This document shows, piece after piece, positions 2,306 to 64,000 of a stretch of DNA of 64,000 bases. The translations under genes were made by a program, and so were the position numbers. The stretch lies in the sequence record MT811961.1, one strand, 5' to 3'. Position 1 is the stretch's first letter, and the number at the start of each line of letters is the position of its first letter. The notes beneath the pieces were generated by a model that was not told the origin of the DNA, did no database searches, and worked only from the letters and a program-made list of their open reading frames with translations.

Positions 2306-3573
2306 TGGAAATGAAAGATTATATTGGCATTGGTATGGTGTTCATCATCTTTGCTGTTTTTGCTTTGGGCTACATACTTCGAAAAAGCGGCGCTAATGTA
2401 GACAAGAACCATGCAGAGATGAACAAGGCTGCACAGAAGTCTTTAGATAAGATTGAGGCTACAAAGGATGCAAACTATGCCTATATCCGCCGCGTATTAG
2501 ACGAACATATTGTTAACCTGGAACACGGTAAAGAACTGTTCATGGAACTCATCAACATCTCCGGTGTTCGAGACATGTGCCTGTCTTCGGCTTTCCAGAA
2601 GAACGAAATGTATATCTTTGAAGATGATGGCGTGTTTGTTGCGAGACTGCGCTGCGCAGAAAAAGAACACATCGGTGAGCTGTTTGCTATTCTCTTTTAC
2701 CTGCATCAGTTTACAACCATCAAGCTTTTCTTCCATAAGTCCAAAGCCTCTAACAACGATGGCTGGAATCTGGCTACGTGGGAAAAGACGATGCAAGAGA
2801 TGTTATGGGAACTAGGTGATATCTGTCTTGTTGACTTTGAAAAGAAAATACAGGATAAACGGGCTTGTTCGTTCTACCATTTTGTACCAGACAACATCAA
2901 GTCTCCAGTACCTATGGAAATCCATCATGAGTTGTTTGTTCAAACTACATTACCACCGCGTTATGTGGCACATGCAATCACAATGGAATATCAAGGCACG
3001 CCATCTCCTGAAGAAATGGCTACGTACTTTATTGCCGACTACTCTGCCAAAAAGATACACAAGCGAACCCCACTGACTATTGAAGTTGACTTCCAGCAAG
3101 ACGGTGAGGTGCATGTAATCCCACTGGCAGACGGAACAAAAGACGAATACCTCATCGACGATAATGATGATGTTCGTGTTTTAATTCCATCCACAAGTGA
3201 ATTTGGCGAACGTCTGAGTGCATACATGGAAGACACAGCCAGCGAATATTTTGCAGTGCCGCATCATAACACAATGCTAAGTCGTCCTATTCGTCGTCCA
3301 TGGAACTCTGTGGTGTACACACCGGCAGACAAAGATGTGTTGTTCTCTATTACCGAAGACAAGGTACTAGAGCGCTGTGTTCGTGCTGAGGAACTCCTAG
3401 ACCTAAATCAACTCGTAACAGGTGTCTTACCAGACGGCAAACAATTCTACATCAAAGAAGTTGTCCCTGCCTACGTTAAGATCATGGGCGAAGAAACTAA
3501 CTCCTATGCCTTTATTGGCACACTAGGTGAACAACACCCAGTAGCCGAAGTAAGAATCGCCGGCGAAGAATAG
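2305..3573 (+). CDS. Hypothetical membrane-anchored protein (N-terminal TM)
   Basis: 422-aa ORF, TAATG coupling, TM YIGIGMVFIIFAVFALGYIL. Confidence 0.7.
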   Translation: MEMKDYIGIGMVFIIFAVFALGYILRKSGANVDKNHAEMNKAAQKSLDKIEATKDANYAYIRRVLDEHIVNLEHGKELFMELINISGVRDMCLSSAFQKNEMYIFEDDGVFVARLRCAEKEHIGELFAILFYLHQFTTIKLFFHKSKASNNDGWNLATWEKTMQEMLWELGDICLVDFEKKIQDKRACSFYHFVPDNIKSPVPMEIHHELFVQTTLPPRYVAHAITMEYQGTPSPEEMATYFIADYSAKKIHKRTPLTIEVDFQQDGEVHVIPLADGTKDEYLIDDNDDVRVLIPSTSEFGERLSAYMEDTASEYFAVPHHNTMLSRPIRRPWNSVVYTPADKDVLFSITEDKVLERCVRAEELLDLNQLVTGVLPDGKQFYIKEVVPAYVKIMGEETNSYAFIGTLGEQHPVAEVRIAGEE

Positions 3574-3593
3574 TTTCATCGTTTCTTCATTTC

Positions 3594-3601
3594 TATATAA
3601 C
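3594..3601 (+). promoter_or_regulatory. Early promoter core TATATAAC
   Basis: ttcTATATAACcaatgtgaa, matches consensus shared with 9901 and 43750. Confidence 0.7.
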
Positions 3602-3641
3602 CAATGTGAATATTCACGCTAAACCAACAAAGGAGACAATT

Positions 3642-3944
3642 ATGTCTATCAACGTTAAAACTCTATCTGTACTAGCTAAAGACACTAAAGGCAACCACTT
3701 CTTCAAAATCCTAGGTAAGAAAAATGGCAAAGTTACTTTGTCTGTAGCAGCAGATAACGAACTAGGTCTAACTGACATCACAGTTGACGCGTTCAAAGAA
3801 GTGAAAGGTGCGAAAGTTGGTTCTGTTGTTACTGTAACAAAAGACGGCGACGACCTAAGCTTCTCTGTTGAAGCGCCAGAACCAAAAGCTGGTCACCAGC
3901 GCAAAACCACTACTCCAGCAGTACGTGAAACCCTAGCAATCTAA
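3642..3944 (+). CDS. Small beta-rich early protein, unknown function
   Basis: AAGGAG RBS, own promoter and terminator, strongly biased codons (GGT, CTA, AAA). Confidence 0.8.
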   Translation: MSINVKTLSVLAKDTKGNHFFKILGKKNGKVTLSVAADNELGLTDITVDAFKEVKGAKVGSVVTVTKDGDDLSFSVEAPEPKAGHQRKTTTPAVRETLAI

Positions 3945-3952
3945 TTGCATTC

Positions 3953-3994
3953 GCTCCTGCCCCATCTGGGGCGGGAGCTATCATTTTATTTTTT
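3953..3994 (+). terminator. Rho-independent terminator
   Basis: GCTCCTGCCCC-atct-GGGGCGGGAGC followed by T-rich tract. Confidence 0.75.
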
Positions 3995-4015
3995 ATCCTT
4001 TTATCAGGAGCCACA
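3994..4015 (+). repeat. 22-bp leader repeat copy 1 (TATCCTTTTATCAGGAGCCACA)
   Basis: Exact copy at 5137-5158; both contain the AGGAG RBS. Confidence 0.9.
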
Positions 4016-4016
4016 C

Positions 4017-4598
4017 ATGACTACGATATATGCAGTGAACGATTGGATCGGTGCAGATATGAACCACGCACAGTACCTAAACAAACCTCGCTTCGAAGAA
4101 CAAAAGTTAGCATTCTCTAAATTGGATTGCGTTATTCTGGCTATTGGCGGGTGGTCTCGTACCGCAGCCCGTGTTCATACAATAGCAACTTACTTTGAGA
4201 TCATGTTGCTTGCACAATGCTTTGGGTTTGACGATATCCTCGCAAAGGCTAAAACCAAAATCATCGACGATGCGGTAAACGACACGGTCATCGGTCTTTA
4301 TAAACGAGATGGTCGCGTTATTACGTTCTGTTTTGAAGATGAACGATTCGATATTGAGTTTCGTTCTGATGGCGTTGGATATGGAACTGGATTACTTTGT
4401 GCCAAAGCAGAGTATCACCGTCAAGCGATCTTGGATGAGTTCTGTATGGACACCATCATGGAAAAGACAGCAAGACTCGATCCACAAACTTCCGAAAGCT
4501 TTCATACTTACCATGGTGATGGTCTGACTGATTTAGAAAGCATCGAAGTTAAAAAGTTTAAAGAAATCGTTGAAGAATACCTAGGAGAGAAATTATGA
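4017..4598 (+). CDS. Proteasome-beta/HslV-like Ntn hydrolase with N-terminal Thr
   Basis: Starts MTTIY; GAD, QKL, ILAIGG, GYGTG and DPQT..FHT motifs parallel HslV (TTIVS, AGD, K33, AGFAG, AIGSG, YTNHFHT as recalled). Confidence 0.65.
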   Translation: MTTIYAVNDWIGADMNHAQYLNKPRFEEQKLAFSKLDCVILAIGGWSRTAARVHTIATYFEIMLLAQCFGFDDILAKAKTKIIDDAVNDTVIGLYKRDGRVITFCFEDERFDIEFRSDGVGYGTGLLCAKAEYHRQAILDEFCMDTIMEKTARLDPQTSESFHTYHGDGLTDLESIEVKKFKEIVEEYLGEKL

Positions 4599-5128
4599 GT
4601 AAGGGTGCTAACTGGATCGCGATGGTTCGCGACAAACTAATCGTTCCTGCAAAGATGCTGGCTGTTACACCAGACTGTTCACCAACTTCAAGTATGTTAA
4701 AAACAAAGTATGGTTTGGTGTTTCTACAAACCACAGGTGATCTTTCTTACTTTAACCATATGATGGCAGGTGAGTTAGAAAACATGTGTATGTCAGGTGA
4801 ACATTCGCACTGGGGCTTCTGCCTTATCCGCCCAGATGGCAGTGTCATCTTCCGTGCACTGGATCGTCCTACAAAAGACGAGGTACGTGAAACTCAATAC
4901 ATGTTTTATCCAGATCAAGACGTAACACACCTCCTAGGCCACGGTGATCGCATAGCTGCTTTTAATGCAGTAGCAGAAGAGCCATGTCATCGTATCATCA
5001 AGATCATGCGCAACATGTTTCCAGCCGCTGGTGATTGGCATGTGATCGATATCAAACGCAGTGCTGAAAAACTAAAAGACTGCGAACCACTACCACGTAC
5101 AGTTGGCGTTATCCGCAAGCTGTCTTAA
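4595..5128 (+). CDS. Degenerate Ntn-fold paralog lacking the N-terminal Thr
   Basis: ATGA overlap with 4017 gene; CLIRPDGSVIF vs GLYKRDGRVITF, GHGDRIAA vs GYGTGLLCA, TTGD in the AG position. Confidence 0.45.
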   Translation: MSKGANWIAMVRDKLIVPAKMLAVTPDCSPTSSMLKTKYGLVFLQTTGDLSYFNHMMAGELENMCMSGEHSHWGFCLIRPDGSVIFRALDRPTKDEVRETQYMFYPDQDVTHLLGHGDRIAAFNAVAEEPCHRIIKIMRNMFPAAGDWHVIDIKRSAEKLKDCEPLPRTVGVIRKLS

Positions 5129-12766: not shown

Positions 12767-13828
12767 ATGGACTACAAAACTTTAGTTGTTACTGCTATCG
12801 GTATTCTTGCCGTTACTATTTTAGGTTTGCTCTATATCCACAGCGAGCGAGAAAAACGCCGTTTGCGTAAAGTGTCTACTGACACGACTGCGTTTGCAGA
12901 AGGCAGCACAGAACCAGTTATAGACTTTCTGTTGGATACGGCCTATGTGCGCAATGCTGTTACCACTCAGCACGTGGGCGTTTCAACACAGACGTTCGAA
13001 ATCGATGCTTTTATCAGTTTCATGGACAAGTACAAGAAAGCTTTGACCACTGCCTTAGAAGACTTCACGGACAACACCAACCGCATGGATTCGGTACATT
13101 GGGCGGTTGGCATGATGTTGGAAATCTATGGCGAAGGCATGGGCTATCATATTACAGCAGCGCGCTTTGGTAATGTACCGGATTCAGTACGCAGCTTAAT
13201 GATGATCTCGTTTGCCGAAACAGTTGCACATCGTGACAAAAATGATGCCCCATTTGACTTTGTGGAAACTTGGCTAAGTCTTGTTGAGACGAATCGTTTC
13301 TGTTATTCTTTGGAAGAACTAAACTCAGAGTTCTTTGTTGGACATACAGTACATCGTCACTTGGAAGATTACTTTGATAACCACAATCGCTTCTGTGATG
13401 ATCTATCTGCACGCCAACGCATTCAGATGGCACGTGTTATGCATAACAACTTCCGTAAGGTTCCTGCACATAGCTGTGTTACACAGACTCGCTCATGCAA
13501 CTGGCGTTTGTTGTTCTTGGCTACATGGATTCACGAAGCGTACATCAACGTTGAGTTTGAATTGACTGACTTAGAGACGTACGTCTTAGAGGACCGTCTG
13601 CTTGACTATGATGCACGTTCGGATCTTGAGGTATCTCTCTTTCCAACAAAGGAAGAAGATATTGAAGTAAACGACCTGGAAGAGGAAGAGGCTCTTATGC
13701 TAGAAGCAGATGAAACTCTAACTCATCTGGATGGGCCTGGTCGCGGTTACAAAGATCCGCAGACAATGCTGATCGAAGCAGAAGATGAAGCAGCTGAGTC
13801 ATCAAGCAATTCTGATTCAGAAGACTAA
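12767..13828 (+). CDS. Hypothetical membrane-anchored protein with acidic C-terminus
   Basis: TM TLVVTAIGILAVTILGLLYI; D/E-rich tail. Confidence 0.7.
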   Translation: MDYKTLVVTAIGILAVTILGLLYIHSEREKRRLRKVSTDTTAFAEGSTEPVIDFLLDTAYVRNAVTTQHVGVSTQTFEIDAFISFMDKYKKALTTALEDFTDNTNRMDSVHWAVGMMLEIYGEGMGYHITAARFGNVPDSVRSLMMISFAETVAHRDKNDAPFDFVETWLSLVETNRFCYSLEELNSEFFVGHTVHRHLEDYFDNHNRFCDDLSARQRIQMARVMHNNFRKVPAHSCVTQTRSCNWRLLFLATWIHEAYINVEFELTDLETYVLEDRLLDYDARSDLEVSLFPTKEEDIEVNDLEEEEALMLEADETLTHLDGPGRGYKDPQTMLIEAEDEAAESSSNSDSED

Positions 13829-13833
13829 AAGAA

Positions 13834-13880
13834 AAGAGGGGAGCGTTTGCTCCTCTCTTCTTCTTATTTTTTTTTTCTTT
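13834..13880 (+). terminator. Rho-independent terminator
   Basis: AAGAGGGGAGC-gttt-GCTCCTCTCTT followed by long T run. Confidence 0.85.
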
Positions 13881-13898
13881 TCATCGGTTGTTGATCTC

Positions 13899-13906
13899 TA
13901 TATTAC
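13899..13906 (+). promoter_or_regulatory. Early promoter core TATATTAC
   Basis: gatctcTATATTACcaatgtgat. Confidence 0.8.
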
Positions 13907-13945
13907 CAATGTGATTATCAACCCTAAACCTTAAAAGAGGCTATT

Positions 13946-17183: not shown

Positions 17184-17942
17184 ATGATCTATTTAAATCA
17201 TCACCTTGCGCGGGTTTTATGGCCTGATAGCATTTGGCCCTTAATTGATGCATCTGGACTTATCGGTCTAGCGTGGGACGAACTTGCTTTGATCAAAGGT
17301 TCGTGGATGGAAACGGCCGGCCTATCACTAGAGCACCACAAGCTCAATGTGGACGAGGATGGCAACCTAAGAGGTTTTGGCAGTAGTATTGGCATGACGT
17401 ACAACAACGATCATGTACAGCTAGTACAGCATCGTGCAGGCACTACAGTACGTGCTGAGTTCGACGGTGGTTCTTATGAGCTACGTAAACTCGGTCGTGG
17501 TCCACGCTGTTGTGTTAAACCTGGTTTAGTTCGCACTATCCATAGGGACAATGAAGAATGGACACAGATCATCGAAGGCCCAAATGGCAATGATCAAATT
17601 CTGAAGTTCGATAAGCTTAACCGCATTATTTCTCACCGACAAGGAAGAAGCAATGAAAAGCGATACGAGTACATCTTTGGCAGAGGGCCAGCAAGACTCC
17701 TCTTCAACGACACCGTCCAAACCTACGAATACGACACTGGGTCATCGGGTTTGCCAAAAGCTATTGTCGGTAAAGGACGAACTGATTTCGTCATTTCGAG
17801 AAATGTCGATGGAGCAGTACATAGTCTTAGCAGTGGCAATACTGTCTTGCTCGATTTTAGTCAATTTATTCTGGAGATAGATGAGAAGTCTTCTATCGCC
17901 GCTAAATCACTCAAAGCCCGTTTAACAGGAGAAAAGCGATGA
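17184..17942 (+). CDS. YD/RHS-like beta-hairpin repeat protein
   Basis: FDKLNRII, RYEY, TYEYD repeats; N-terminal SGLIGL motif; GGAGG RBS. Confidence 0.55.
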   Translation: MIYLNHHLARVLWPDSIWPLIDASGLIGLAWDELALIKGSWMETAGLSLEHHKLNVDEDGNLRGFGSSIGMTYNNDHVQLVQHRAGTTVRAEFDGGSYELRKLGRGPRCCVKPGLVRTIHRDNEEWTQIIEGPNGNDQILKFDKLNRIISHRQGRSNEKRYEYIFGRGPARLLFNDTVQTYEYDTGSSGLPKAIVGKGRTDFVISRNVDGAVHSLSSGNTVLLDFSQFILEIDEKSSIAAKSLKARLTGEKR

Positions 17943-18580
17943 GTTCTAATCCGTTGATTGTCGGAATCATTATTCTGATGTTTATTTGTTTTGTACTGGG
18001 TGCTCGTCTATGGGTAGTCACCGAACAAAAAGTACGTTTTCGTGATCTGTATCATGACATGCGTGATAAAAAGAATCTGTATCGCCGCTGTATCGAAAAC
18101 GTAATCTGCCTCTTGGAAAAAGAAGCGGTTATTCCGGTTATCCAAAACCGCATTAGTTTTCTATTGGCCAACAGTATCGACTGTCATAATGATACGTTAA
18201 AGTTCTTGGCTGAAAATAATCTTAATGAGTTAAAGACAATTCTGGAACTCATGGATTATGCGCGCACTGAAGATCATCCAAACAAACTTGTCTTCTATAT
18301 TACCAAAGAGCATGAGTACTGCTTATGGAATCCGATCACAAAAGAGTATGCTGCCACACATGGCGATACAGTGATCTTCCATCACTACATACTTGGCAAA
18401 GAAGACTGGGGTCGAGTTATATTGCTAACTCCATGTATTCGAAATGGTCAATTGACCTTTAAGAAAGGCAGCAGTTACGTGGAGCCAAGAAAGATTTCAT
18501 TAAGAATAGGTCGAGGACATTCTATAGCAGAAGTGCTGGCCCAAGAAATCTCTGTGGGCAAAGCGTTAACAAACGATTAA
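17939..18580 (+). CDS. Hypothetical membrane-anchored protein
   Basis: TM PLIVGIIILMFICFVLGA; ATGA coupling. Confidence 0.7.
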   Translation: MSSNPLIVGIIILMFICFVLGARLWVVTEQKVRFRDLYHDMRDKKNLYRRCIENVICLLEKEAVIPVIQNRISFLLANSIDCHNDTLKFLAENNLNELKTILELMDYARTEDHPNKLVFYITKEHEYCLWNPITKEYAATHGDTVIFHHYILGKEDWGRVILLTPCIRNGQLTFKKGSSYVEPRKISLRIGRGHSIAEVLAQEISVGKALTND

Positions 18581-36387: not shown

Positions 36388-36423
36388 CTATTTGGATTTA
36401 ATGTACTTAACTAGGAAACCACT

Positions 36424-40554: not shown

Positions 40555-40910
40555 TGCATGTAGATGATTCTGTCACTCCTCTCTGGATGGCGATCATCTT
40601 TTCTCCGGTTGTGTTCGGTTTGATCTATAATCTCTTTAGACCAAAGAAGAAGCAGCCGGAGATGTCAAAGAAAGATCTTGCTATTGCCAGAGATTTTAAA
40701 CTTCAAGCAATCCGCATATTCTGGGATTGTCTATCGGAAGGCGGTTCAATAAGTTCCGCCATATCTTTATTGCATCAGTACCATATCCAACACTGCTGTA
40801 TGTACCCTCATAATCGAGAAATTCAAAATTATCATGTCCAGACCGAAGTAGCCAAACTCACTCGTCGCTGGAATAAATCAAAAGGAAACCACTATGAAAA
40901 CTCTAACTAA
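40554..40910 (+). CDS. Small membrane-anchored protein
   Basis: TM PLWMAIIFSPVVFGLIYNLF then basic stretch. Confidence 0.65.
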   Translation: MHVDDSVTPLWMAIIFSPVVFGLIYNLFRPKKKQPEMSKKDLAIARDFKLQAIRIFWDCLSEGGSISSAISLLHQYHIQHCCMYPHNREIQNYHVQTEVAKLTRRWNKSKGNHYENSN

Positions 40911-41944: not shown

Positions 41945-42187
41945 ATGAAGACCCTAATCAGCATTGCCCTAAAGCCTACACAACTAGCATGTATCATGGA
42001 AGAGAAAGATGGCACTCAGTACATCTATATCTGTAATGCTAAATGTCTTGTGCAGAAAACAAGCTCTGATCCTAAACGCCCATCTAAGTTCATGGCGACA
42101 ATTCAGATCTCTGATATTGCAAAGGCAATCAAATACATGGCCAAGTTAAACGAACGTGGTATCGAGCATTACCAGGCTCATTACTAA
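41945..42187 (+). CDS. Small hypothetical protein
   Basis: GAGAAACCAACTATG leader, 80 aa. Confidence 0.65.
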   Translation: MKTLISIALKPTQLACIMEEKDGTQYIYICNAKCLVQKTSSDPKRPSKFMATIQISDIAKAIKYMAKLNERGIEHYQAHY

Positions 42188-42643: not shown

Positions 42644-43000
42644 ATGAGTATTTTCGGCGCAGTATTATCAGTAGTTATTCTTGTTATCTTTGTAGTTGCA
42701 TTTATGCTTAAAGCAACATCACTAAATGACAAAGCATCGACCAACACAAAGACAGACCTAACTCTAGCATACAACAAAGCAGTAAGCATTGGTATCTGGG
42801 TAGGTAATGTACATGCACGCGATCTTCAAAAAGTTTTGAATCGCTGTAAATGTCTAAACAAAAGCCACATGGAATATGAGCTGCGTCGTGTACTTGTAAC
42901 TAGCCTTTGTAAAAACGAAGGTTTGTTTATTACAGGTGCAGACTTTGATACTGCTCTTGTTTCAGCTTACAACACAGTCCGTGCTCGTCACGGACTTTAA
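42644..43000 (+). CDS. Small membrane-anchored protein
   Basis: TM IFGAVLSVVILVIFVVAFML; AAGGA RBS. Confidence 0.7.
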   Translation: MSIFGAVLSVVILVIFVVAFMLKATSLNDKASTNTKTDLTLAYNKAVSIGIWVGNVHARDLQKVLNRCKCLNKSHMEYELRRVLVTSLCKNEGLFITGADFDTALVSAYNTVRARHGL

Positions 43001-43027
43001 CCCCAGCCAACCGAGGAGAAACCAACC

Positions 43028-43687
43028 ATGGCTAAACGAATGAAAATCTACATCGGCGACAAAGCCTTCTACCGTGTACGTGTTCACAACGATACCGAGA
43101 AGCTTCATACTGAACATGCACTTCCAGTTCGTCGTGCAATCAGTCTTCTCAGAAACACAGTTGTACCTGAAGAGGTAGCTACTACAGTAGAGCTTTCCGA
43201 CTTAGCTCGCCGTTGTGAGGATTACCGCGATGTCTGTAAAGGTCAATTCATGACCATCAATGCGGCACGTCTATTTGAAAGACAACTAACCTCAGTAGAA
43301 GATATCGTCATTCTAGAAAAGTCTCTAGCAATGACTATTTCTCATATCCGCAATATTGACAATGGCTATCCGTTATATGTCTGCTTCCACGATGAGTCAT
43401 ATTTCTTTGTATCCAAGTCAAAGCTAGTACCAGAAAACTTTAACTGTCGCGATCCATTGGCAGTTCATCACAACGGGCTAGAACAACTGGTTAACTCACT
43501 GATGAAAATCTACAATAAAGGCAAGCATTGTGGGACGCCACTTGCACAGTCTTCTCTTGACTTCATCTTAAAGTTAGTTAGTTACATACAAGATAAGATT
43601 GACGATGGTCAAACTTATACCCCAATCCAAGTTCGTCCTGAATATCTACAGCGACGAGAATTTCAAAAACAGCTAAATGCAGCGTAG
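43028..43687 (+). CDS. Hypothetical protein, NDxxK paralog family member 1
   Basis: VHNDTEKL and LTSVEDIVIL motifs shared with 45066 and 45726. Confidence 0.65.
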   Translation: MAKRMKIYIGDKAFYRVRVHNDTEKLHTEHALPVRRAISLLRNTVVPEEVATTVELSDLARRCEDYRDVCKGQFMTINAARLFERQLTSVEDIVILEKSLAMTISHIRNIDNGYPLYVCFHDESYFFVSKSKLVPENFNCRDPLAVHHNGLEQLVNSLMKIYNKGKHCGTPLAQSSLDFILKLVSYIQDKIDDGQTYTPIQVRPEYLQRREFQKQLNAA

Positions 43688-43726
43688 ACTACAGGAGATC
43701 TTCTAGCGAGGGTCTCCGATAATCTA
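43685..43726 (+). other. CA/GA-internal-loop stem-loop element, copy D
   Basis: TAGACTA-CA-GGAGATCTTC-tagc-GAGGGTCTCC-GA-TAATCTA. Confidence 0.8.
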
Positions 43727-43749
43727 TGTTATCATTGTGTCTATATCTC

Positions 43750-43757
43750 TATATAAC
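43750..43757 (+). promoter_or_regulatory. Early promoter core TATATAAC
   Basis: tatctcTATATAACcaatgtgaa. Confidence 0.8.
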
Positions 43758-43798
43758 CAATGTGAATCTATCCACCTGAAAGATAAAAGGAAACCACT

Positions 43799-43927
43799 AT
43801 GTCTTTTGAAACTACTTACGAACTAGAACAAGACATCACAAGCATCTTTGAAGAAGACGGCATCTACGATGACATCTCTAGTGATCTTCAATACGATGAC
43901 ATTCTTTACGCAGTACAAGAGGATTAA
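43799..43927 (+). CDS. 42-aa hyper-acidic peptide (missed by the ORF track)
   Basis: MSFETTYELEQDITSIFEEDGIYDDISSDLQYDDILYAVQED*; AAGGAAACCACTATG leader; stop 2 nt before the next ATG. Confidence 0.8.
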   Translation: MSFETTYELEQDITSIFEEDGIYDDISSDLQYDDILYAVQED

Positions 43928-43929
43928 CA

Positions 43930-44670
43930 ATGTGCCATCCTGTGTTTCCAGAAACAATGACACGTGATCTTTTAGAAGATGCAATGGCCATTGTCTATGG
44001 ACAAGAACTAAAACTAGCCTCGAAGCGCACGTTCTTTAAACGACATGAAAACGCCGAGGTTACTTGTCGCTGGCATGGAGACAAAACCGTTTCCATGGAG
44101 CGCCTCATTTACAGCATGGATGACAAACCTTCTCATGTCTGTGATGATTGCAATAAGTCAACAAAGCAAGGTCAGAATCTAACTGCAACAAAGATTCCAC
44201 CTGCTCTTGTTTATCAACGAGTAAACGGATGGGAAGTTGAATATCTCGACGATCGTCCTTTTATCATGGCACAGCCAAGATTGTTTCGTTGTCCTAAGCA
44301 TGGACTATTCCGTCAAGAACCTAACTTTATACTTGATCGAATTAAACGCAACGATACAACAGCATGCTCATGTCCTGTCTGTGCACTGCTGTACAACGAT
44401 CTTGTAGATCGCAAATACAAAAGCTGGCAGTCTAAGATCGAAAAGAATGTCGGCAAGAACAACATGGGCCAATTTCATAGTGACAATCCGAACTTTAAAT
44501 TCTTGGTATCGGGTCCTATGTTAGCAACCAAACGTTGTCCTAAACACGGCAAATATGACTTGACTCTTACTGAACTTATTCACGGTAAGACTTGTCCTAA
44601 ATGCACAACCGAGACTGGCCTACTTGGCTGGTTTAACACAACTTACCACTGGCGCAACAAATTCGCATAA
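43930..44670 (+). CDS. Multi-Zn-ribbon protein (CPKHG repeats, DUF723-like)
   Basis: CRWHG...CDDC, CPKHG...CPVC, CPKHG...CPKC. Confidence 0.6.
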   Translation: MCHPVFPETMTRDLLEDAMAIVYGQELKLASKRTFFKRHENAEVTCRWHGDKTVSMERLIYSMDDKPSHVCDDCNKSTKQGQNLTATKIPPALVYQRVNGWEVEYLDDRPFIMAQPRLFRCPKHGLFRQEPNFILDRIKRNDTTACSCPVCALLYNDLVDRKYKSWQSKIEKNVGKNNMGQFHSDNPNFKFLVSGPMLATKRCPKHGKYDLTLTELIHGKTCPKCTTETGLLGWFNTTYHWRNKFA

Positions 44671-44684
44671 TCGGAGAAACCATC

Positions 44685-44999
44685 ATGACTAAAGCAACAG
44701 ATCTAGTAGCAATCAAATACATTGGCCGTTACATCAAATGGAATGGCAACCAAACTGAAGTTCGTCCTGTAATGAAGACAAAGGATCGCGAAACACGTGA
44801 TCCTAAGACAGACAAGGTCACAGTTATTCCTGGTGTTCCATTGATCTCACTCGATGGTCCTTACACACGTCAAGAAGCAATGGACTTCCTAGCAATGCGT
44901 GCAAACGAAAACGCTAACTCTCCTAGCACATGGGAAATCGTAGAGCTATCTGCTATTCCTTTGCAAACTGACGTGACTGAGAACAACTGGCGCGGCTAA
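44685..44999 (+). CDS. Small hypothetical protein
   Basis: GGAGAAACCATCATG leader. Confidence 0.7.
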   Translation: MTKATDLVAIKYIGRYIKWNGNQTEVRPVMKTKDRETRDPKTDKVTVIPGVPLISLDGPYTRQEAMDFLAMRANENANSPSTWEIVELSAIPLQTDVTENNWRG

Positions 45000-45007
45000 A
45001 CCGAATT

Positions 45008-45050
45008 GCAGTCTCGCTTCGGCGAGGCTGCTTAATCATATTCTTTATTT
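45008..45050 (+). terminator. Probable terminator (UUCG loop)
   Basis: GCAGTCTCGC-ttcg-GCGAGGCTGC plus T-rich tail. Confidence 0.6.
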
Positions 45051-45065
45051 TTGGAAATCACTAAA

Positions 45066-45716
45066 ATGGCTATAGTAAAAAGACGTAGAGCAATTAACGA
45101 CTATATGCGCGATGGCATCGTAATCACAAAGATCTACTTTCAAAACGACTCTGAGAAAACTACCCGCAAATACAAAGACGATGGCCTTACTGGGTATATT
45201 GCCGAACTCGTATCAAAACATGTTGCTGTTAAAGGCCATCATGTGATCACAAGTACTGAAATTGAAGCGTGGGTGAAAAAGAATTACCCGCACCTCGGAC
45301 GCAAAGAAGTTACTCTTGTTAATCTTGCCTGTCGTATGAACAAAGAGATTACTTCTCTTGATGACTTTATTCTTGTTCCTCGTGGTACAATGGACTCTGA
45401 ACTAAAAGTCTTTCCAAGAGGGGACATTCCTCCATATGTCTTTCAGGACGAGCGAGGTTATTATCGCCTGAATAAAACAAAGATTATCGGTTCGATGTAT
45501 CATGGTAATAGTAAATGGGATTGTCATACACATGGCATGAAATACTTTATCCGTCATTTAGAAGACCTCGTTTACAAGGTCAATCTAACGCCACATGCTC
45601 GCTTGGGTATGATTCGATTCATCGAGTATCTTTGTGACCTACAAGAGAAGAAGCAATACTGGACTGGTCGCATCCATCGCTACGCGGCTATCAAGCACCA
45701 ACTAAAAGCACTATAG
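45066..45716 (+). CDS. Basic hypothetical protein, NDxxK paralog family member 2
   Basis: YFQNDSEKT and ITSLDDFILV motifs. Confidence 0.65.
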   Translation: MAIVKRRRAINDYMRDGIVITKIYFQNDSEKTTRKYKDDGLTGYIAELVSKHVAVKGHHVITSTEIEAWVKKNYPHLGRKEVTLVNLACRMNKEITSLDDFILVPRGTMDSELKVFPRGDIPPYVFQDERGYYRLNKTKIIGSMYHGNSKWDCHTHGMKYFIRHLEDLVYKVNLTPHARLGMIRFIEYLCDLQEKKQYWTGRIHRYAAIKHQLKAL

Positions 45717-45725
45717 GAAACCACT

Positions 45726-46355
45726 ATGTCTGTAATCAGAAACACCGAAACAAAAGTACTACTTGGCAATACTGTTCGCAAAGGCTACTTCAATAACGAC
45801 TCTGGCAAGACTCAAGCCCACCTAATGAAAACCGAACCGCTGGTAATGCGCATCGCAGAAGCCATCAAGAAACTAGGTTGGCTTGAAGGCACACATGAAC
45901 ACAAGTACAGCGAGATAAAAGAGTGGATTAACTTAAACTACTCTCATATCACCTGTACAAAAGATGTTCGTGTTAACTGTTGGATCATGCGTTTCAACCT
46001 CGTACCATCTCGACTCGATCACCTTATTGTTTTAAACAAAGCGGATTCTTATGCGTTCCGTCGTACGACTACACGTAGTAAAGAAGGCCTATATCGCCAA
46101 GACAGAAACTCTGATGTGTTTAATGTACAACCATCGGCAATCTTTCCGAAGCGCATCGTTACCACCAACCATGACGAAGGTTACGAGCGATGCGTATTGA
46201 TGTTGCGTAAATGGTACAAGTGCAAAATGATCGAAGCACCATGCCATCATAACCGCATGGTATTTGAAAACCTAGCGCGCCTGATCAAGAACTTGGTTAA
46301 TGCCAGAATGCCTATTCGAGCAGAAACCGCAGAGTGGCGCTATATTCCGAAATAA
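45726..46355 (+). CDS. Basic hypothetical protein, NDxxK paralog family member 3
   Basis: YFNNDSGKT and SRLDHLIVL motifs; GGAAACCACTATG leader. Confidence 0.65.
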   Translation: MSVIRNTETKVLLGNTVRKGYFNNDSGKTQAHLMKTEPLVMRIAEAIKKLGWLEGTHEHKYSEIKEWINLNYSHITCTKDVRVNCWIMRFNLVPSRLDHLIVLNKADSYAFRRTTTRSKEGLYRQDRNSDVFNVQPSAIFPKRIVTTNHDEGYERCVLMLRKWYKCKMIEAPCHHNRMVFENLARLIKNLVNARMPIRAETAEWRYIPK

Positions 46356-46369
46356 TAAGGACGGATAAT

Positions 46370-46528
46370 TTGTTAGCAATAGGTTCTTTAATGATCCTTT
46401 GTGTTGCCGTAGGTGGTGTTTTGTTAGCCAACCTACGCATCACTCCAGCACCAAAGCAAAAGCCTGTTGTCGTTAAGCAGGCTAAGTCTAACCCGACTAA
46501 GTACAAACGTATAGACATATTCTGTTAA
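46370..46528 (+). CDS. Small membrane protein (TTG start)
   Basis: AAGGA upstream of TTG 46370; TM then basic tail. Confidence 0.5.
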   Translation: MLAIGSLMILCVAVGGVLLANLRITPAPKQKPVVVKQAKSNPTKYKRIDIFC

Positions 46529-46569
46529 ATCGTTTGAATCTTTTAACTATTAATTACCAGGAGTCCATT

Positions 46570-46869
46570 ATGGAAGCTCAAGTTTACATTATCGTAGGTC
46601 TTGTATTTGCCCTACTCTTTGCATGTTGTGTTGCACGATACTTTTGGATGCAAGCAAAAGAAACTCAAATTACTAACGATGGCCTAGTGCTAGAACTGGG
46701 TCAGGTTGGTACCGAACTGACTGCAATTAAATCTGATCTGAGTTCGATTCATAAACAAGCCAGATTGCTACTGGTCGAACGCCACAAACTGAAAGCTCGA
46801 TTGCCTCGCATCCTGGGCAAAGAAAAAGCACATCAGGTAATGCAAGATTATCCTGTGCTCTTTAAGTAA
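46570..46869 (+). CDS. TM plus coiled-coil small protein
   Basis: GGAG RBS before ATG 46570; VYIIVGLVFALLFACCVA. Confidence 0.65.
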   Translation: MEAQVYIIVGLVFALLFACCVARYFWMQAKETQITNDGLVLELGQVGTELTAIKSDLSSIHKQARLLLVERHKLKARLPRILGKEKAHQVMQDYPVLFK

Positions 46870-46875
46870 CATACG

Positions 46876-46922
46876 CCTGTCGTCCTTCGGGACGGCAGGT
46901 AGTTCTCTTATTTTTCTTTTTT
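46876..46922 (+). terminator. Rho-independent terminator (UUCG loop)
   Basis: CCTGTCGTCC-ttcg-GGACGGCAGG plus T tracts. Confidence 0.8.
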
Positions 46923-55353: not shown

Positions 55354-55554
55354 TTAAAAATCTAGGTCATCTAGACCATCTAAAACATCTTCTCGCTCAA
55401 GATGTTCAATGTGCTCAACAAGACTATCGATAGCCAAACGTTTTCTTTGAATCGCTTCATCATTGTCCGTCAACAACAGATCTAGATATTCTGCTTTTAG
55501 TTTTGTCAGCATTGTTTTTGAATCATCTAAATCAAGACCGGTGAAAGCTGGCAT
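55354..55554 (-). CDS. Small acidic helical protein
   Basis: 66 aa, AGAGGA RBS, D/E-rich C-terminus. Confidence 0.65.
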   Translation of the reverse strand: MPAFTGLDLDDSKTMLTKLKAEYLDLLLTDNDEAIQRKRLAIDSLVEHIEHLEREDVLDGLDDLDF

Positions 55555-61112: not shown

Positions 61113-63992
61113 TTAGTTACGTGGAGTCGGTGCGTAGATGTATGGACCATCGCCCAGTACTACCGCAAAGTAATACAGAGCAGGAGAGCCCATGTTGTCA
61201 TCGCCTGGATAGAACGAGGTTTCGTTAGCTCCCGCTGTTGTGATAACACCCCCAGAATAACGAGCCAGAGACTTATGTGCAACATCCACATAGCCAGTAC
61301 CACCAGCGATCGTATGTCCTACAGACCAAGCCTGTGAAGACGATGCACTGATTGTGTTGTGGCTCATTGGGTTTTGCGCAATTGCCAACCATTTACCAGA
61401 GTTAGCATCATCTGGACCTGTTGTTGCCAAGAACGTCATACGTGGGCTTGTATCCAAACTCAACATTTCGTTGTGTCCGTTATGAGACAAGTCTTTTACA
61501 CGTACGTTTAACAGCCCTGGGATTTCAGCAAAGAAGATAAAGGTAGTCTTTTCTCCTGCACCATTCCAGTTCGGTGCTGTTGTTTGACCTACATCATTCA
61601 GCGTCCAGCGTCCATCTTTACTTGCCTTCATTTCCATAGGAACTTGGATTTCCCAGCCCTGTTGAACATAGCCAGTATTCTTATCGGCACGGATAAAGAA
61701 ATGACGATCTTCACCTTCTGAATAGAAACACCAGTACGGATGTTTGCCTGCTGTATGTGGCAGAATCAAACAGGCACTTGCTCGCTTACCTAGCGTCATG
61801 TTAAATTCACGTCTACCTGGAACACCAGAACCAACGATCGTTTCTACATGAACACCTCGACAGGCTTCACCGCCGATAGCTGCCACAGAAGCGTCTGTAG
61901 TCGTCGTAGCCCAACGGTTGGTGTTAAACCGAACCATCGTACCCAAATCCTCTACTACCTTACCGGAGCGCTTAATGGCACCCCCAGGTCGGTCTAGACA
62001 AAGTGTCAAATCCCATCCAGTATCTTCTGTTAAAACATAAGAACCATTTGAAGAAATGATAAATGCCACCGTGGGATCAGCAATGTGTGTCATCGTGATG
62101 TTTGTGCCCGTACTGAAGTTATTATTCGTACGTGTCGATACAAAACGAGAAGACAAGTTGTTGTACGGATAGGTACCTGCTAGCGTTGGGCCACAGACTG
62201 CCTGAGAGCCAGCTGGTTGATGCTTAAATGGCACTTGACCAAAGTTAATCACCATCTCTCCCTGAGCACTGGAGTTCTGACGACGCATCATACCACGAAT
62301 ACGCATCTCGTGTTGAGGCATGTTCATGTAGTTTACTCGGCTACCATTGTAGTATACCGAGATGACCTTACCGTCATAATCAAACAAAAAGCCAACGGTC
62401 ATGTCACGTGGTATTGACCCGGCAATTCCTCCGTCTACTTCTTTGTAACCAGTAGTCGGCCAGTAACGATTACTATTTCGAATCACACCGATTTCTTGGC
62501 CAGAGTTAGGACCTTCAATATAGAAAGCACAATCCGTATACATGGAGAATGCCGTCGTGTTATTCGTCTCGCACTCTACATATAACTTGCCTTTTGTCTT
62601 GCGTTCTAACCCAGGGATAACAGAAGGAGTAGCAAACGTTGCTTGGTTTTGCCATGACAGCAAAGTACCTAGCTTAAACTTCGTACCGCCATTCTGAAGC
62701 ATCAAGTTTTGCTGAACGGTTTCCAAGTCATTCGGCTGAAGACTTAGTCCGACAGACAACTGCGCCTTTGGATAGAAGTGACGATTGTCATTGAAGTTAA
62801 ACGGATGTTCGTTTTGTTTCCAACGAGGGTCTACAGTAAAGCCTTTCATTGGGTTAACAAACGACTCACCTTCGCCAATCAACAACACATAGTCCTCACC
62901 ACCACGCCCAAACGCACTACTACCAAACGTACGTCCATTTTCTGGTACCCAGTCAAAATGATAGCGCTTGCCCATAAAGGTATCGATACGAGTACCTTCG
63001 TATGGATTATGCAACCATCTACGTTCGGTGCCTCCCTGGAAGATATTACTATTCCAGTTTATCGGAGTTGCCGTTACCTGAGAACGACCACCATCATCAC
63101 TAAAGGCCTGTACTACCGGATGGGCATTGAACTGTCCTGTTCGTGAAGGGAAGCGAGGCCAGCCGATTTTGTACGGCTGTGTAGTAGGGAACATGTGCGT
63201 AGATGAAAACGCCTCTAGCTCAGGATACCACTTCATGATCATTACCGGCTGCTCAATGGCATTCGTGTTCATGTATGAAAGCTCATCGGCATCTGGTGAT
63301 GACGTACCCATTGCATGCCAGTACCATTCACCATCCATTTGGAATGGTTTGTCTGCTAGCTGTACACAGTGGAAGTATGGGTTTTGATTTGACGTGTTAA
63401 AAGTACGTGTTGTGTCATTCCAACGATAAACAATACAATACCCACGCTTCGAATCGATAAAGCTGTTTGGTGCAGCAAAAGCAAAAACATAGGAGTTTTT
63501 ACCGTCACTAAAACAACGACAAGAAACAAACTTTTCAAGATTACCAAAACCTACCGCACTACCAGAAGGCAACGATGTAACTTTAGGCTGTGCAGAAACT
63601 GCACCCATGTCAATCTCAGAGTACAACTGTAGATAGCCGTCTTCAGTAACAATAGCAGCAATCGAGTCACGACTACTGTGATGTGTTTGACAGATATCAA
63701 AGTCACGGATCTTTGAACTGCGTTTGTTTTCTAGACCACCATAGCCCCAAGTACGAACGGCTCCAGAAGCCAGTACGAAACGCACCTGAGCATTCCATCG
63801 GTCAGTGGTACGGTCAAAAGCAACCGCCAACAAGTTAGTGTCATCATCTACTGCACGAATGCGACATGGGATTGCCTTGATAACTTCACCTCGAGTTGCG
63901 GTATCTAGCTCTACCCAGTCTTGAGGTGCCAGTGTACTAGGATCTATTTTAGATACTGCACATGTACCATTACGACCGCTGTAGTTAGACAT
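61113..63992 (-). CDS. Tail fibre/receptor-binding-like protein with a SPRY (B30.2) domain
   Basis: KLYVECE...VGFLFDYDGKVISVYYNG...INFGQVPF (about 62215-62600); aromatic- and Gly-rich beta domains elsewhere. Confidence 0.65.
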   Translation of the reverse strand: MSNYSGRNGTCAVSKIDPSTLAPQDWVELDTATRGEVIKAIPCRIRAVDDDTNLLAVAFDRTTDRWNAQVRFVLASGAVRTWGYGGLENKRSSKIRDFDICQTHHSSRDSIAAIVTEDGYLQLYSEIDMGAVSAQPKVTSLPSGSAVGFGNLEKFVSCRCFSDGKNSYVFAFAAPNSFIDSKRGYCIVYRWNDTTRTFNTSNQNPYFHCVQLADKPFQMDGEWYWHAMGTSSPDADELSYMNTNAIEQPVMIMKWYPELEAFSSTHMFPTTQPYKIGWPRFPSRTGQFNAHPVVQAFSDDGGRSQVTATPINWNSNIFQGGTERRWLHNPYEGTRIDTFMGKRYHFDWVPENGRTFGSSAFGRGGEDYVLLIGEGESFVNPMKGFTVDPRWKQNEHPFNFNDNRHFYPKAQLSVGLSLQPNDLETVQQNLMLQNGGTKFKLGTLLSWQNQATFATPSVIPGLERKTKGKLYVECETNNTTAFSMYTDCAFYIEGPNSGQEIGVIRNSNRYWPTTGYKEVDGGIAGSIPRDMTVGFLFDYDGKVISVYYNGSRVNYMNMPQHEMRIRGMMRRQNSSAQGEMVINFGQVPFKHQPAGSQAVCGPTLAGTYPYNNLSSRFVSTRTNNNFSTGTNITMTHIADPTVAFIISSNGSYVLTEDTGWDLTLCLDRPGGAIKRSGKVVEDLGTMVRFNTNRWATTTTDASVAAIGGEACRGVHVETIVGSGVPGRREFNMTLGKRASACLILPHTAGKHPYWCFYSEGEDRHFFIRADKNTGYVQQGWEIQVPMEMKASKDGRWTLNDVGQTTAPNWNGAGEKTTFIFFAEIPGLLNVRVKDLSHNGHNEMLSLDTSPRMTFLATTGPDDANSGKWLAIAQNPMSHNTISASSSQAWSVGHTIAGGTGYVDVAHKSLARYSGGVITTAGANETSFYPGDDNMGSPALYYFAVVLGDGPYIYAPTPRN

Positions 63993-64000
63993 AAAGACAT

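Follow-up and report, generated by a model that had tools for sequence, protein, structure and literature searches.

The classical DNA-mimic proteins, Ocr (T7 gp0.3), ArdA and T4 Arn, act against restriction enzymes or against H-NS; they are 90-170 residues long and adopt defined folds in which carboxylates are arranged in the manner of a DNA backbone. Acidic segments can also work within a single protein, as in the C-terminal tails of bacterial SSB, T4 gp32 and T7 gp2.5, which fold back onto the proteins' own basic DNA-binding surface. T7 gp5.9 is very small (~50 residues) and highly acidic (pI ~4), with helical character (PMC9836394). Here we describe a 42-aa peptide, encoded by a Vibrio jumbo phage beside a gene for a zinc-finger (Zn) array, that resembles each of these systems in part. 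With Ocr, ArdA and Arn it shares dense Asp/Glu and, as its promoter would suggest, early expression; unlike them it has only 42 residues, is predicted to be disordered and has no Pfam or PHROG match. It resembles T7 gp5.9 in size, acidity and predicted helical character, but is shorter, has no basic residues, shows no coiled-coil or amphipathic periodicity above chance and lies beside a Zn-array gene. The likeness to the SSB, gp32 and gp2.5 tails is one of proposed mechanism: a short disordered segment of Asp/Glu and aromatic residues would be paired with a basic nucleic-acid-binding module, except that the acidic element is encoded by its own gene and the proposed partner is a zinc-finger array, not an OB fold. 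Judged by its sequence, the peptide is like the DNA-mimic class in composition, with dense Asp/Glu and a low pI, and is not a demonstrable member of any of its families.

The DNA analyzed (the window, 64,000 nt) is 100% identical to record positions 222,285-286,284 of Vibrio phage vB_pir03 (MT811961.1), the last 64 kb of a 286,284-bp jumbo phage genome whose host is Vibrio harveyi. Among 50,697 phage records, the sole close relative was Vibrio phage C-ZP2022 (OM319461.1), with 87% identity measured over a 2-kb query (window 43000-45000). The two phages were isolated on two different Vibrio species. pir03 encodes multisubunit RNA polymerases, and its nearest described relative is BONAISHI (PMC7765460). 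The chimallin of BONAISHI is ORF71 (PMC10587174), which corresponds to AXH70812.1, and tblastn with this protein found chimallin homologues in pir03, C-ZP2022, the jumbo phage vB_VpaM_sm033 (sm033) and Yong phages. Since pir03 carries a chimallin homologue, the phage to which the window belongs has the gene content of nucleus-forming Chimalliviridae. Its shell protein shares 53% identity with the sm033 homologue, which is annotated as 'nuclear shell protein'.

The features of the locus, in window coordinates, are as follows.

43693-43718, + strand: stable hairpin directly 3' of the stop of a 219-aa gene, terminator-like with no T-run, forming the 5' boundary of the cassette
43748-43757, + strand: early-promoter-like motif TCTATATWAC with GTG a few bases 3', identified by its nine copies and the likeness of its core to phiKZ-type promoters
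43787-43798, + strand: ribosome binding site (RBS) and spacer of the peptide gene (the 'stereotyped leader'), identified as a recurrent 15-mer
43799-43927, + strand: gene for a hyper-acidic micro-protein (42 aa, net charge -14, QNI21254.1), identified by its ORF and by codon-position bias relative to C-ZP2022
43919-43923, + strand: GAGGA Shine-Dalgarno of the Zn-array gene, inside the last codons of the peptide and conserved in C-ZP2022
43930-44670, + strand: gene for a basic, nuclease-less Zn-finger array (246 aa, net charge +10, pI 9.06) with three C-x2-HG...C-x2-C units
44685-44999, + strand: third cassette member, a 104-aa gene whose product is 46% identical to SM033_00111
45008-45033, + strand: GC-rich 10-bp hairpin with a UUCG loop followed by a U-rich tract, terminator-like, forming the 3' boundary of the cassette
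45051-46900, + strand: downstream genes reachable by read-through (paralogous 221-aa and 209-aa genes, a 45-aa basic ORF and a 99-aa gene)

The ORF at 43799-43927 reads as the earlier note had claimed: 14 of its 42 residues are acidic (8 Asp and 6 Glu), Lys, Arg and His are absent, and YDDI is present twice. An in-frame stop 12 nt 5' of ATG 43799 makes this the sole possible start, and the stop codon TAA at 43925-43927 leaves a 2-nt gap to ATG 43930 of the Zn-array gene, again as noted. The peptide ranks first in acidity among the 85 annotated CDSs of the window and also among 894 six-frame ORFs of 20-90 aa, with a net charge of -0.33 per residue compared to -0.14 for the runner-up. The description of the ORF as hidden did not hold, as it is already in GenBank as a hypothetical protein in both phages (QNI21254.1 in pir03, UKZ10734.1 in C-ZP2022). 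A product with no Lys or Arg would be missed by standard tryptic proteomics. Small acidic early phage ORFans are common. An annotated 29-aa CDS at 43737-43826, which overlaps the promoter, is probably not a real gene, as C-ZP2022 retains neither its start codon nor its frame.

Comparison of pir03 with C-ZP2022 indicates that the 42-aa ORF is a genuine protein-coding gene under purifying selection. The peptides are identical at 39 of 42 positions and differ by one E-to-D, one S-to-T and one S-to-G substitution; all 14 acidic positions and all hydrophobic positions are kept. Ten nucleotide differences separate the two genes, distributed 2/0/8 over the three codon positions (binomial p = 0.0034 for eight or more third-position differences among the ten), giving a dN/dS of 0.08 that lies within the range of neighboring genes (0.04-0.21). 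With a dN of 0.030, the peptide gene is among the better-conserved genes in this comparison. Both YDDI motifs arise from an 11-base direct DNA repeat, and the second copy of this repeat has a synonymous change in C-ZP2022; therefore, constraint acts at the protein level. Antisense ORFs were considered as the real gene and rejected, as the third-position bias agrees with the + frame only.

The motif upstream of the peptide gene occurs nine times in the window, every copy on the + strand, compared to 0.23 expected. Eight of these copies are intergenic, 42-118 nt 5' of a gene start, and the copy at 43748 begins 51 nt 5' of the peptide ATG. Table 2 of PMC7058600 gives an AT-rich core of 8 bases as the predicted phiKZ promoter; for 201phi2-1 it gives this core plus a GTG a few bases further on. 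This core is found in six of the nine window copies, with those at 43748, 3592 and 9899 deviating at one core position, and GTG lies downstream of most copies. The window motif therefore has the AT-rich core in common with the early (virion RNA polymerase) promoters of phiKZ and 201phi2-1, and the downstream GTG as in 201phi2-1. Unlike these, the clade-specific extended motif adds a 5' TC and tolerates T or A at one core position. It behaves as phiKZ-type promoters do in being present in many co-oriented, intergenic copies ahead of hallmark early genes: the motif is conserved in C-ZP2022 and is also located 5' of the chimallin genes of BONAISHI, pir03 and sm033, and ChmA is transcribed early in phiKZ (PMC13282480). 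This pattern indicates that TCTATATWAC is a clade-specific early-class promoter motif and that the peptide gene would be expressed early, which upholds the earlier reading of an early promoter at 43750, with its timing still conditional on the motif. A sigma-70 promoter at this position was ruled out, as no such site was detected near 43750. The peptide had also been called first-transcribed; it is the promoter-proximal gene of its unit, but units of this kind number at least eight in the window.

The leader 15-mer, which includes the ATG, occurs exactly at 40882 and 43787 and with one mismatch at 36412 and 45714. These four occurrences at no more than one mismatch, compared to 0.01 expected, bear out the claim of a stereotyped leader. 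The leader RNA of the peptide gene is predicted to be unstructured (z = 0.0), and no Rfam match was found across the peptide locus. The 111 nt upstream of the peptide are 93.7% conserved in C-ZP2022, compared to 82.1% for the preceding gene. At the 5' boundary, the 45-nt segment that bears the hairpin (43686-43730) has a predicted folding energy of -17.3 kcal/mol (z = -3.5), and 25 of the 26 hairpin positions (43693-43718) are conserved in C-ZP2022. At the 3' boundary, the hairpin at 45008-45033 is identical at 26 of 26 positions, with flanks that are 87% identical. A strong intrinsic terminator at 46875-46900, stronger than the hairpin at 45008-45033, ends the downstream genes. As the earlier note had proposed, the peptide and Zn-array genes appear to be co-transcribed; the 2-nt gap and the position of the second Shine-Dalgarno inside the peptide ORF indicate that they are probably also translationally coupled.

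The 246-aa product of the next gene contains 11 Cys. Its dN/dS relative to C-ZP2022 is 0.05. Across pir03, C-ZP2022 and sm033, units 1 and 3 keep every Cys/His ligand, whereas unit 2 is only partly conserved. By tblastn the protein matched nuclease-bearing arrays at E values of 7e-5 to 4e-4, and ~90% of its length is collinear with the arrays of g151 from Yersinia phage phiR1-37 (585 aa) and NVP1022O_48 from Vibrio phage 1.022.O (423 aa). These two proteins contain DUF4379, CapR or DUF723 domains, together with a nuclease part that is Vsr-like (sub-threshold) in g151 and T5orf172 in NVP1022O_48. Repeated C-x2-HG...C-x2-C units are common to such DUF723/DUF4379/CapR-like arrays and the window's protein. 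The two relatives have 4-5 units plus a nuclease, whereas three units and no nuclease are present in the window's protein and in its sm033 orthologue. For the 246-aa protein itself, DUF723 scored 15.7 bits, below the Pfam cut-off of 20.9; no HNH, GIY-YIG, T5orf172 or Vsr-like nuclease domain was found with Pfam or NCBIfam, and a PDB profile search gave no match. A single-sequence structure model reached a pLDDT of 31. By analogy with its nuclease-bearing relatives, the array may bind DNA.

The nuclease-bearing relatives have neither an acidic N-terminal segment nor an acidic upstream ORF, unlike the window locus. We considered whether the peptide could be the detached N-terminus of a longer Zn-array protein and rejected this, as the frames differ and the relatives lack an acidic N-terminal segment. 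The third gene encodes a 104-aa protein of net charge 0 that is the best-conserved member of the cassette; it has no family match in PHROGs or Pfam and none in a PDB profile search. A search of viral, metagenome and genome contigs with the Zn-array and 104-aa genes returned no relatives.

Homology searches with the peptide returned only the two copies described above. There was no match in Pfam (E <= 1), PHROGs (E <= 10), NCBIfam (E <= 10) or PDB chain sequences (E <= 10), and nothing beyond pir03 itself and C-ZP2022 was recovered by tblastn of 50,697 phage records, from an index of 5.8 billion proteins or by exhaustive phmmer of 1.84 billion representatives; an acidic query of only 42 residues limits the statistical power of such searches, so distant relatives could have escaped. 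Because small ORFs often go uncalled, raw DNA was also scanned with a degenerate pattern back-translated from the peptide, which gave 0 matches in viral and metagenome contigs. Known DNA-mimic, anti-restriction and anti-CRISPR families (Ocr, ArdA, Arn, Gam and Acr in Pfam and PHROGs) gave no profile or sequence match, and no helix-turn-helix family that could represent an Aca-type regulator was found among the downstream genes with Pfam or PHROGs.

Structural predictions suggest that the 42-aa peptide is probably disordered on its own. It falls on the disordered side of a Uversky plot of charge and hydropathy, and an AF2 single-sequence model has three short helices at low confidence (pLDDT 57.8), with 0 Foldseek matches to the PDB. 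No heptad or amphipathic signal rose above shuffles. The regular spacing of hydrophobic residues that had been noted in the sequence did not survive this comparison, as helical amphipathicity was not above composition-preserving shuffles (p = 0.13-0.54).

The same three-gene, hairpin-bracketed order is present in a third jumbo phage, sm033, where the features are as follows (positions in sm033 L010).

3039-3060: hairpin, the 5' boundary of the sm033 cassette
3097-3267: 56-aa acidic ORF, SM033_00109
3268-3276: 9-nt gap with GGAGG
3277-3999: 240-aa Zn-array gene, SM033_00110
3989-4279: homologue of the 104-aa gene, SM033_00111, 46% identical
4287-4312: hairpin, equivalent of that at window 45008-45033
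4347-4961: homologue of the window's 221-aa gene (E 4e-12)

Residues 3-236 of the 240-aa protein align with residues 11-244 of the window's Zn array (E 2e-5, 20% identity). The sm033 protein also has 11 Cys, is strongly basic (net charge +18, pI 9.5) and, despite its annotation as an 'HNH endonuclease', contains no nuclease domain. Upstream of it, SM033_00109 has a net charge of -11, of which -9 is in its C-terminal half, and ranks first in acidity among the 14 genes of the sm033 locus. Its sequence could not be related to that of the 42-aa peptide: BLASTP found nothing, and Smith-Waterman alignment was no better than shuffles (p = 0.32). Thus, an acidic ORF paired with a nuclease-less Zn array recurs across lineages with charges of -14/+10 in pir03 and -11/+18 in sm033; the charge is kept and the sequence is not.

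Identities between the pir03 and sm033 cassettes are 46%, 26%, 20% and undetectable, compared to the 53% of the shell protein used as a yardstick, which makes the Zn array (20%) and the acidic ORF (undetectable) the fastest-evolving members. Synteny between the two phages covers at least eight genes and reaches several genes upstream of the cassette, so the acidic-ORF slot is old. The early motif is absent directly 5' of the sm033 small ORF, with the nearest copy ~1.5 kb upstream. No matches to the 219-aa upstream gene or to the peptide, Zn-array, 104-aa and 209-aa genes were found in BONAISHI and the Yong phages, and no further cassette members were found beyond pir03, C-ZP2022 and sm033.

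From these comparisons we tentatively favor a role for the peptide as a polyanion that partners or regulates the Zn-array protein, a reading that we place somewhat short of an even chance. The peptide is the first gene product of a conserved cassette that consists of a small acidic protein, a basic nuclease-less Zn array and a ~100-aa protein. It would bind to the basic face at which the Zn-array protein, encoded on the same mRNA, would contact nucleic acids, and would imitate these as an 'acidic tail in trans', with the outcome that the Zn-array protein would be held off non-specific DNA or RNA, or would have its activity gated. Physical binding between the two proteins is the proposed basis of this partnership. 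The coding constraint, the early class of the promoter motif, the 2-nt gap with the second Shine-Dalgarno inside the peptide ORF, the charge complementarity, the sm033 synteny and the predicted disorder of the peptide count in its favor. The adjacency and short gap carry little weight, since gene packing is tight throughout the genome. The only new comparative support for the Zn-array protein as the partner, a possibility that the earlier note had also raised, is that the pairing of an acidic ORF with a basic Zn array recurs in the distant sm033. Conservation of charge, size and position without sequence is as expected if electrostatics is the selected property, and the fast evolution of both the Zn array and the acidic ORF, compared to 46% identity for the third gene, is compatible with co-evolution. 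Against a partnership, the conserved slot could reflect vertical inheritance alone, given synteny over at least eight genes, homology of the sm033 small ORF to the peptide is not demonstrable from sequence, and the putative DNA binding of the Zn array is read from nuclease-bearing relatives, its own Pfam match being sub-threshold. The cassette comparison draws on three phages from two lineages.

A partnership with the Zn array is more likely than the alternative suggested by the earlier note, that the peptide is a stand-alone, host-directed nucleic-acid mimic with an anti-defense role, which we consider unlikely though deserving of serious attention. Such a mimic, probably an oligomer, would act early by occupying the site at which a host protein, such as a defense nuclease, RecBCD, a nucleoid protein or RNase E, binds DNA or RNA. 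The peptide is suitably small, extremely acidic and promoter-proximal in a putative early unit, and there is a precedent of similar size in T7 gp5.9, a dimeric coiled-coil RecBCD DNA mimic of ~50 residues and pI 4.0 (PMC9836394). Against this reading, the pir03 peptide has no heptad or amphipathic signal above shuffles, and modeling gave no confident fold. It also has no profile, sequence or fold match to a known mimic or anti-CRISPR, but DNA mimics are structurally diverse and rarely recognizable by sequence (PMC9836394), so this result is compatible with mimicry. Restriction of the peptide to one lineage is often seen with accessory counter-defense genes; however, the gene is among the better-conserved between phages from two Vibrio species (dN 0.030), and its slot is fixed beside the Zn-array gene across distant lineages instead of being placed in a variable hotspot. 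Nucleus-forming phages are, moreover, described as already resistant to DNA-targeting defenses, and chimallin-bearing phages are reported to be shielded from them (PMC13282480), which counts against this reading.

It is doubtful that the peptide is a subunit or modulator of some other phage product, such as the 104-aa protein, the phage RNA polymerases or nucleus-associated machinery, with an acidic surface that would be used for recognition between proteins instead of mimicry of nucleic acids. Within the cassette, the 104-aa gene is conserved best and lies inside the same hairpin-bracketed unit, but its product has a net charge of 0 and thus offers no charge complementarity. In phiKZ-like phages, host and phage complexes are remodeled by many small proteins from early operons (PMC13282480), yet the polymerase and shell genes of pir03 are located elsewhere in the genome and nothing ties the cassette to them.

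A broader proposal, which we regard as a long shot, is that the peptide and its sm033 counterpart represent an unrecognized class of micro-proteins in which charge alone is conserved, and that no natural nucleic-acid mimic would be smaller. Such proteins might gate a domesticated, nuclease-less DNA-binding array from homing endonucleases in nucleus-forming phages. Alternatively, they might neutralize a nucleic-acid-binding factor of the host within minutes of infection, ahead of the formation of the phage nucleus.

The remaining explanation, that the peptide is inert and translation of a leader ORF itself loads ribosomes for the Zn-array gene, fits the 2-nt stop-start gap, the Shine-Dalgarno inside the ORF, the strong exposed RBS and the very small size, but is highly improbable because the amino-acid sequence and not just an open frame is conserved (dN/dS 0.08, with acidic and hydrophobic positions kept), extreme acidity is retained in the sm033 counterpart despite complete sequence turnover, and the Zn-array gene has its own Shine-Dalgarno.

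If the peptide binds a nucleic-acid-binding surface, natural nucleic-acid mimics would reach down to ~40 residues. Such proteins could then be tracked by position, size and charge after sequence similarity is gone, which would be a lesson for the mining of phage genomes. The promoter motif also provides a usable map of putative early units for the group that includes pir03, C-ZP2022, sm033 and BONAISHI. If the peptide is indeed paired with the Zn array, then a DNA-binding module of homing endonucleases would have been reused, together with its own regulator, in the early program of nucleus-forming phages.

The two YDDI motifs of the 42-aa hyper-acidic peptide (window 43799-43927, +) are encoded by an 11-base direct repeat at 43865-43875 and 43892-43902 (+), and the second of these copies carries a synonymous change in the closely related Vibrio phage C-ZP2022. 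This change leaves the amino acids intact, so what is constrained in the repeat is the encoded protein, as opposed to a DNA site.

Among the reading frames that follow the cassette formed by the peptide gene, the zinc-finger array gene and the 104-aa gene are these:

45051-45716 (+), 221-aa gene
45726-46355 (+), 209-aa gene
46391-46528 (+), 45-aa ORF, N-terminal half hydrophobic and tail basic

The first two are paralogues (E 8e-9) of a family that carries no annotation, and the distant jumbo phage vB_VpaM_sm033 encodes a homologue at the equivalent position (4347-4961 of L010, its counterpart locus; E 4e-12). An unannotated 50-aa ORF at L010 4983-5135, inside a 188-nt 'intergenic' gap, is visibly similar to the 45-aa ORF.

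Two annotations in the sm033 locus merit attention. SM033_00110 (L010 3277-3999) encodes a three-unit zinc-finger array like the 246-aa protein of the window, and a nuclease domain was not detectable with Pfam or PHROGs despite its annotation as an HNH endonuclease. SM033_00105 (L010 1580-1864), whose product is similar to that of the 80-aa ORF at window 41945-42187, contains a promoter-motif copy within its annotated CDS (L010 1597) and an in-frame ATG downstream of the motif at 1622; the true start probably lies 42 nt downstream of the annotated one.

Elsewhere in the window, a second small acidic protein and a terminal annotation were observed:

55354-55554 (-), 66-aa protein near the thymidylate synthase gene, net charge -11, pI 4.2, with PHROG matches below threshold only
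61113-63998 (-), final ~2.9 kb of the genome, labelled 'similar to hypothetical protein' in GenBank under a misc_feature instead of a CDS

The promoter pattern TCTATATWAC occurs nine times in the window, with all copies co-oriented (+), at 3592, 9899, 13897, 18294, 32870, 36378, 36853, 43748 and 52487. The copy at 18294 lies within CDS 17939-18580, with the NAD-dependent DNA ligase gene 302 nt downstream; it may serve as a promoter inside the gene or have arisen by chance. Three tiny annotated CDSs, all basic, each overlap a motif copy:

13785-13934 (+), 49 aa
32786-32884 (+), 32 aa
43737-43826 (+), 29 aa, start codon and frame not kept in C-ZP2022

These three are probably annotation artefacts. 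The TCTATATWAC motif also lies upstream of the chimallin gene in each of pir03, sm033 and the related phage BONAISHI, and the nine copies are probable flags of early transcription units across the window.
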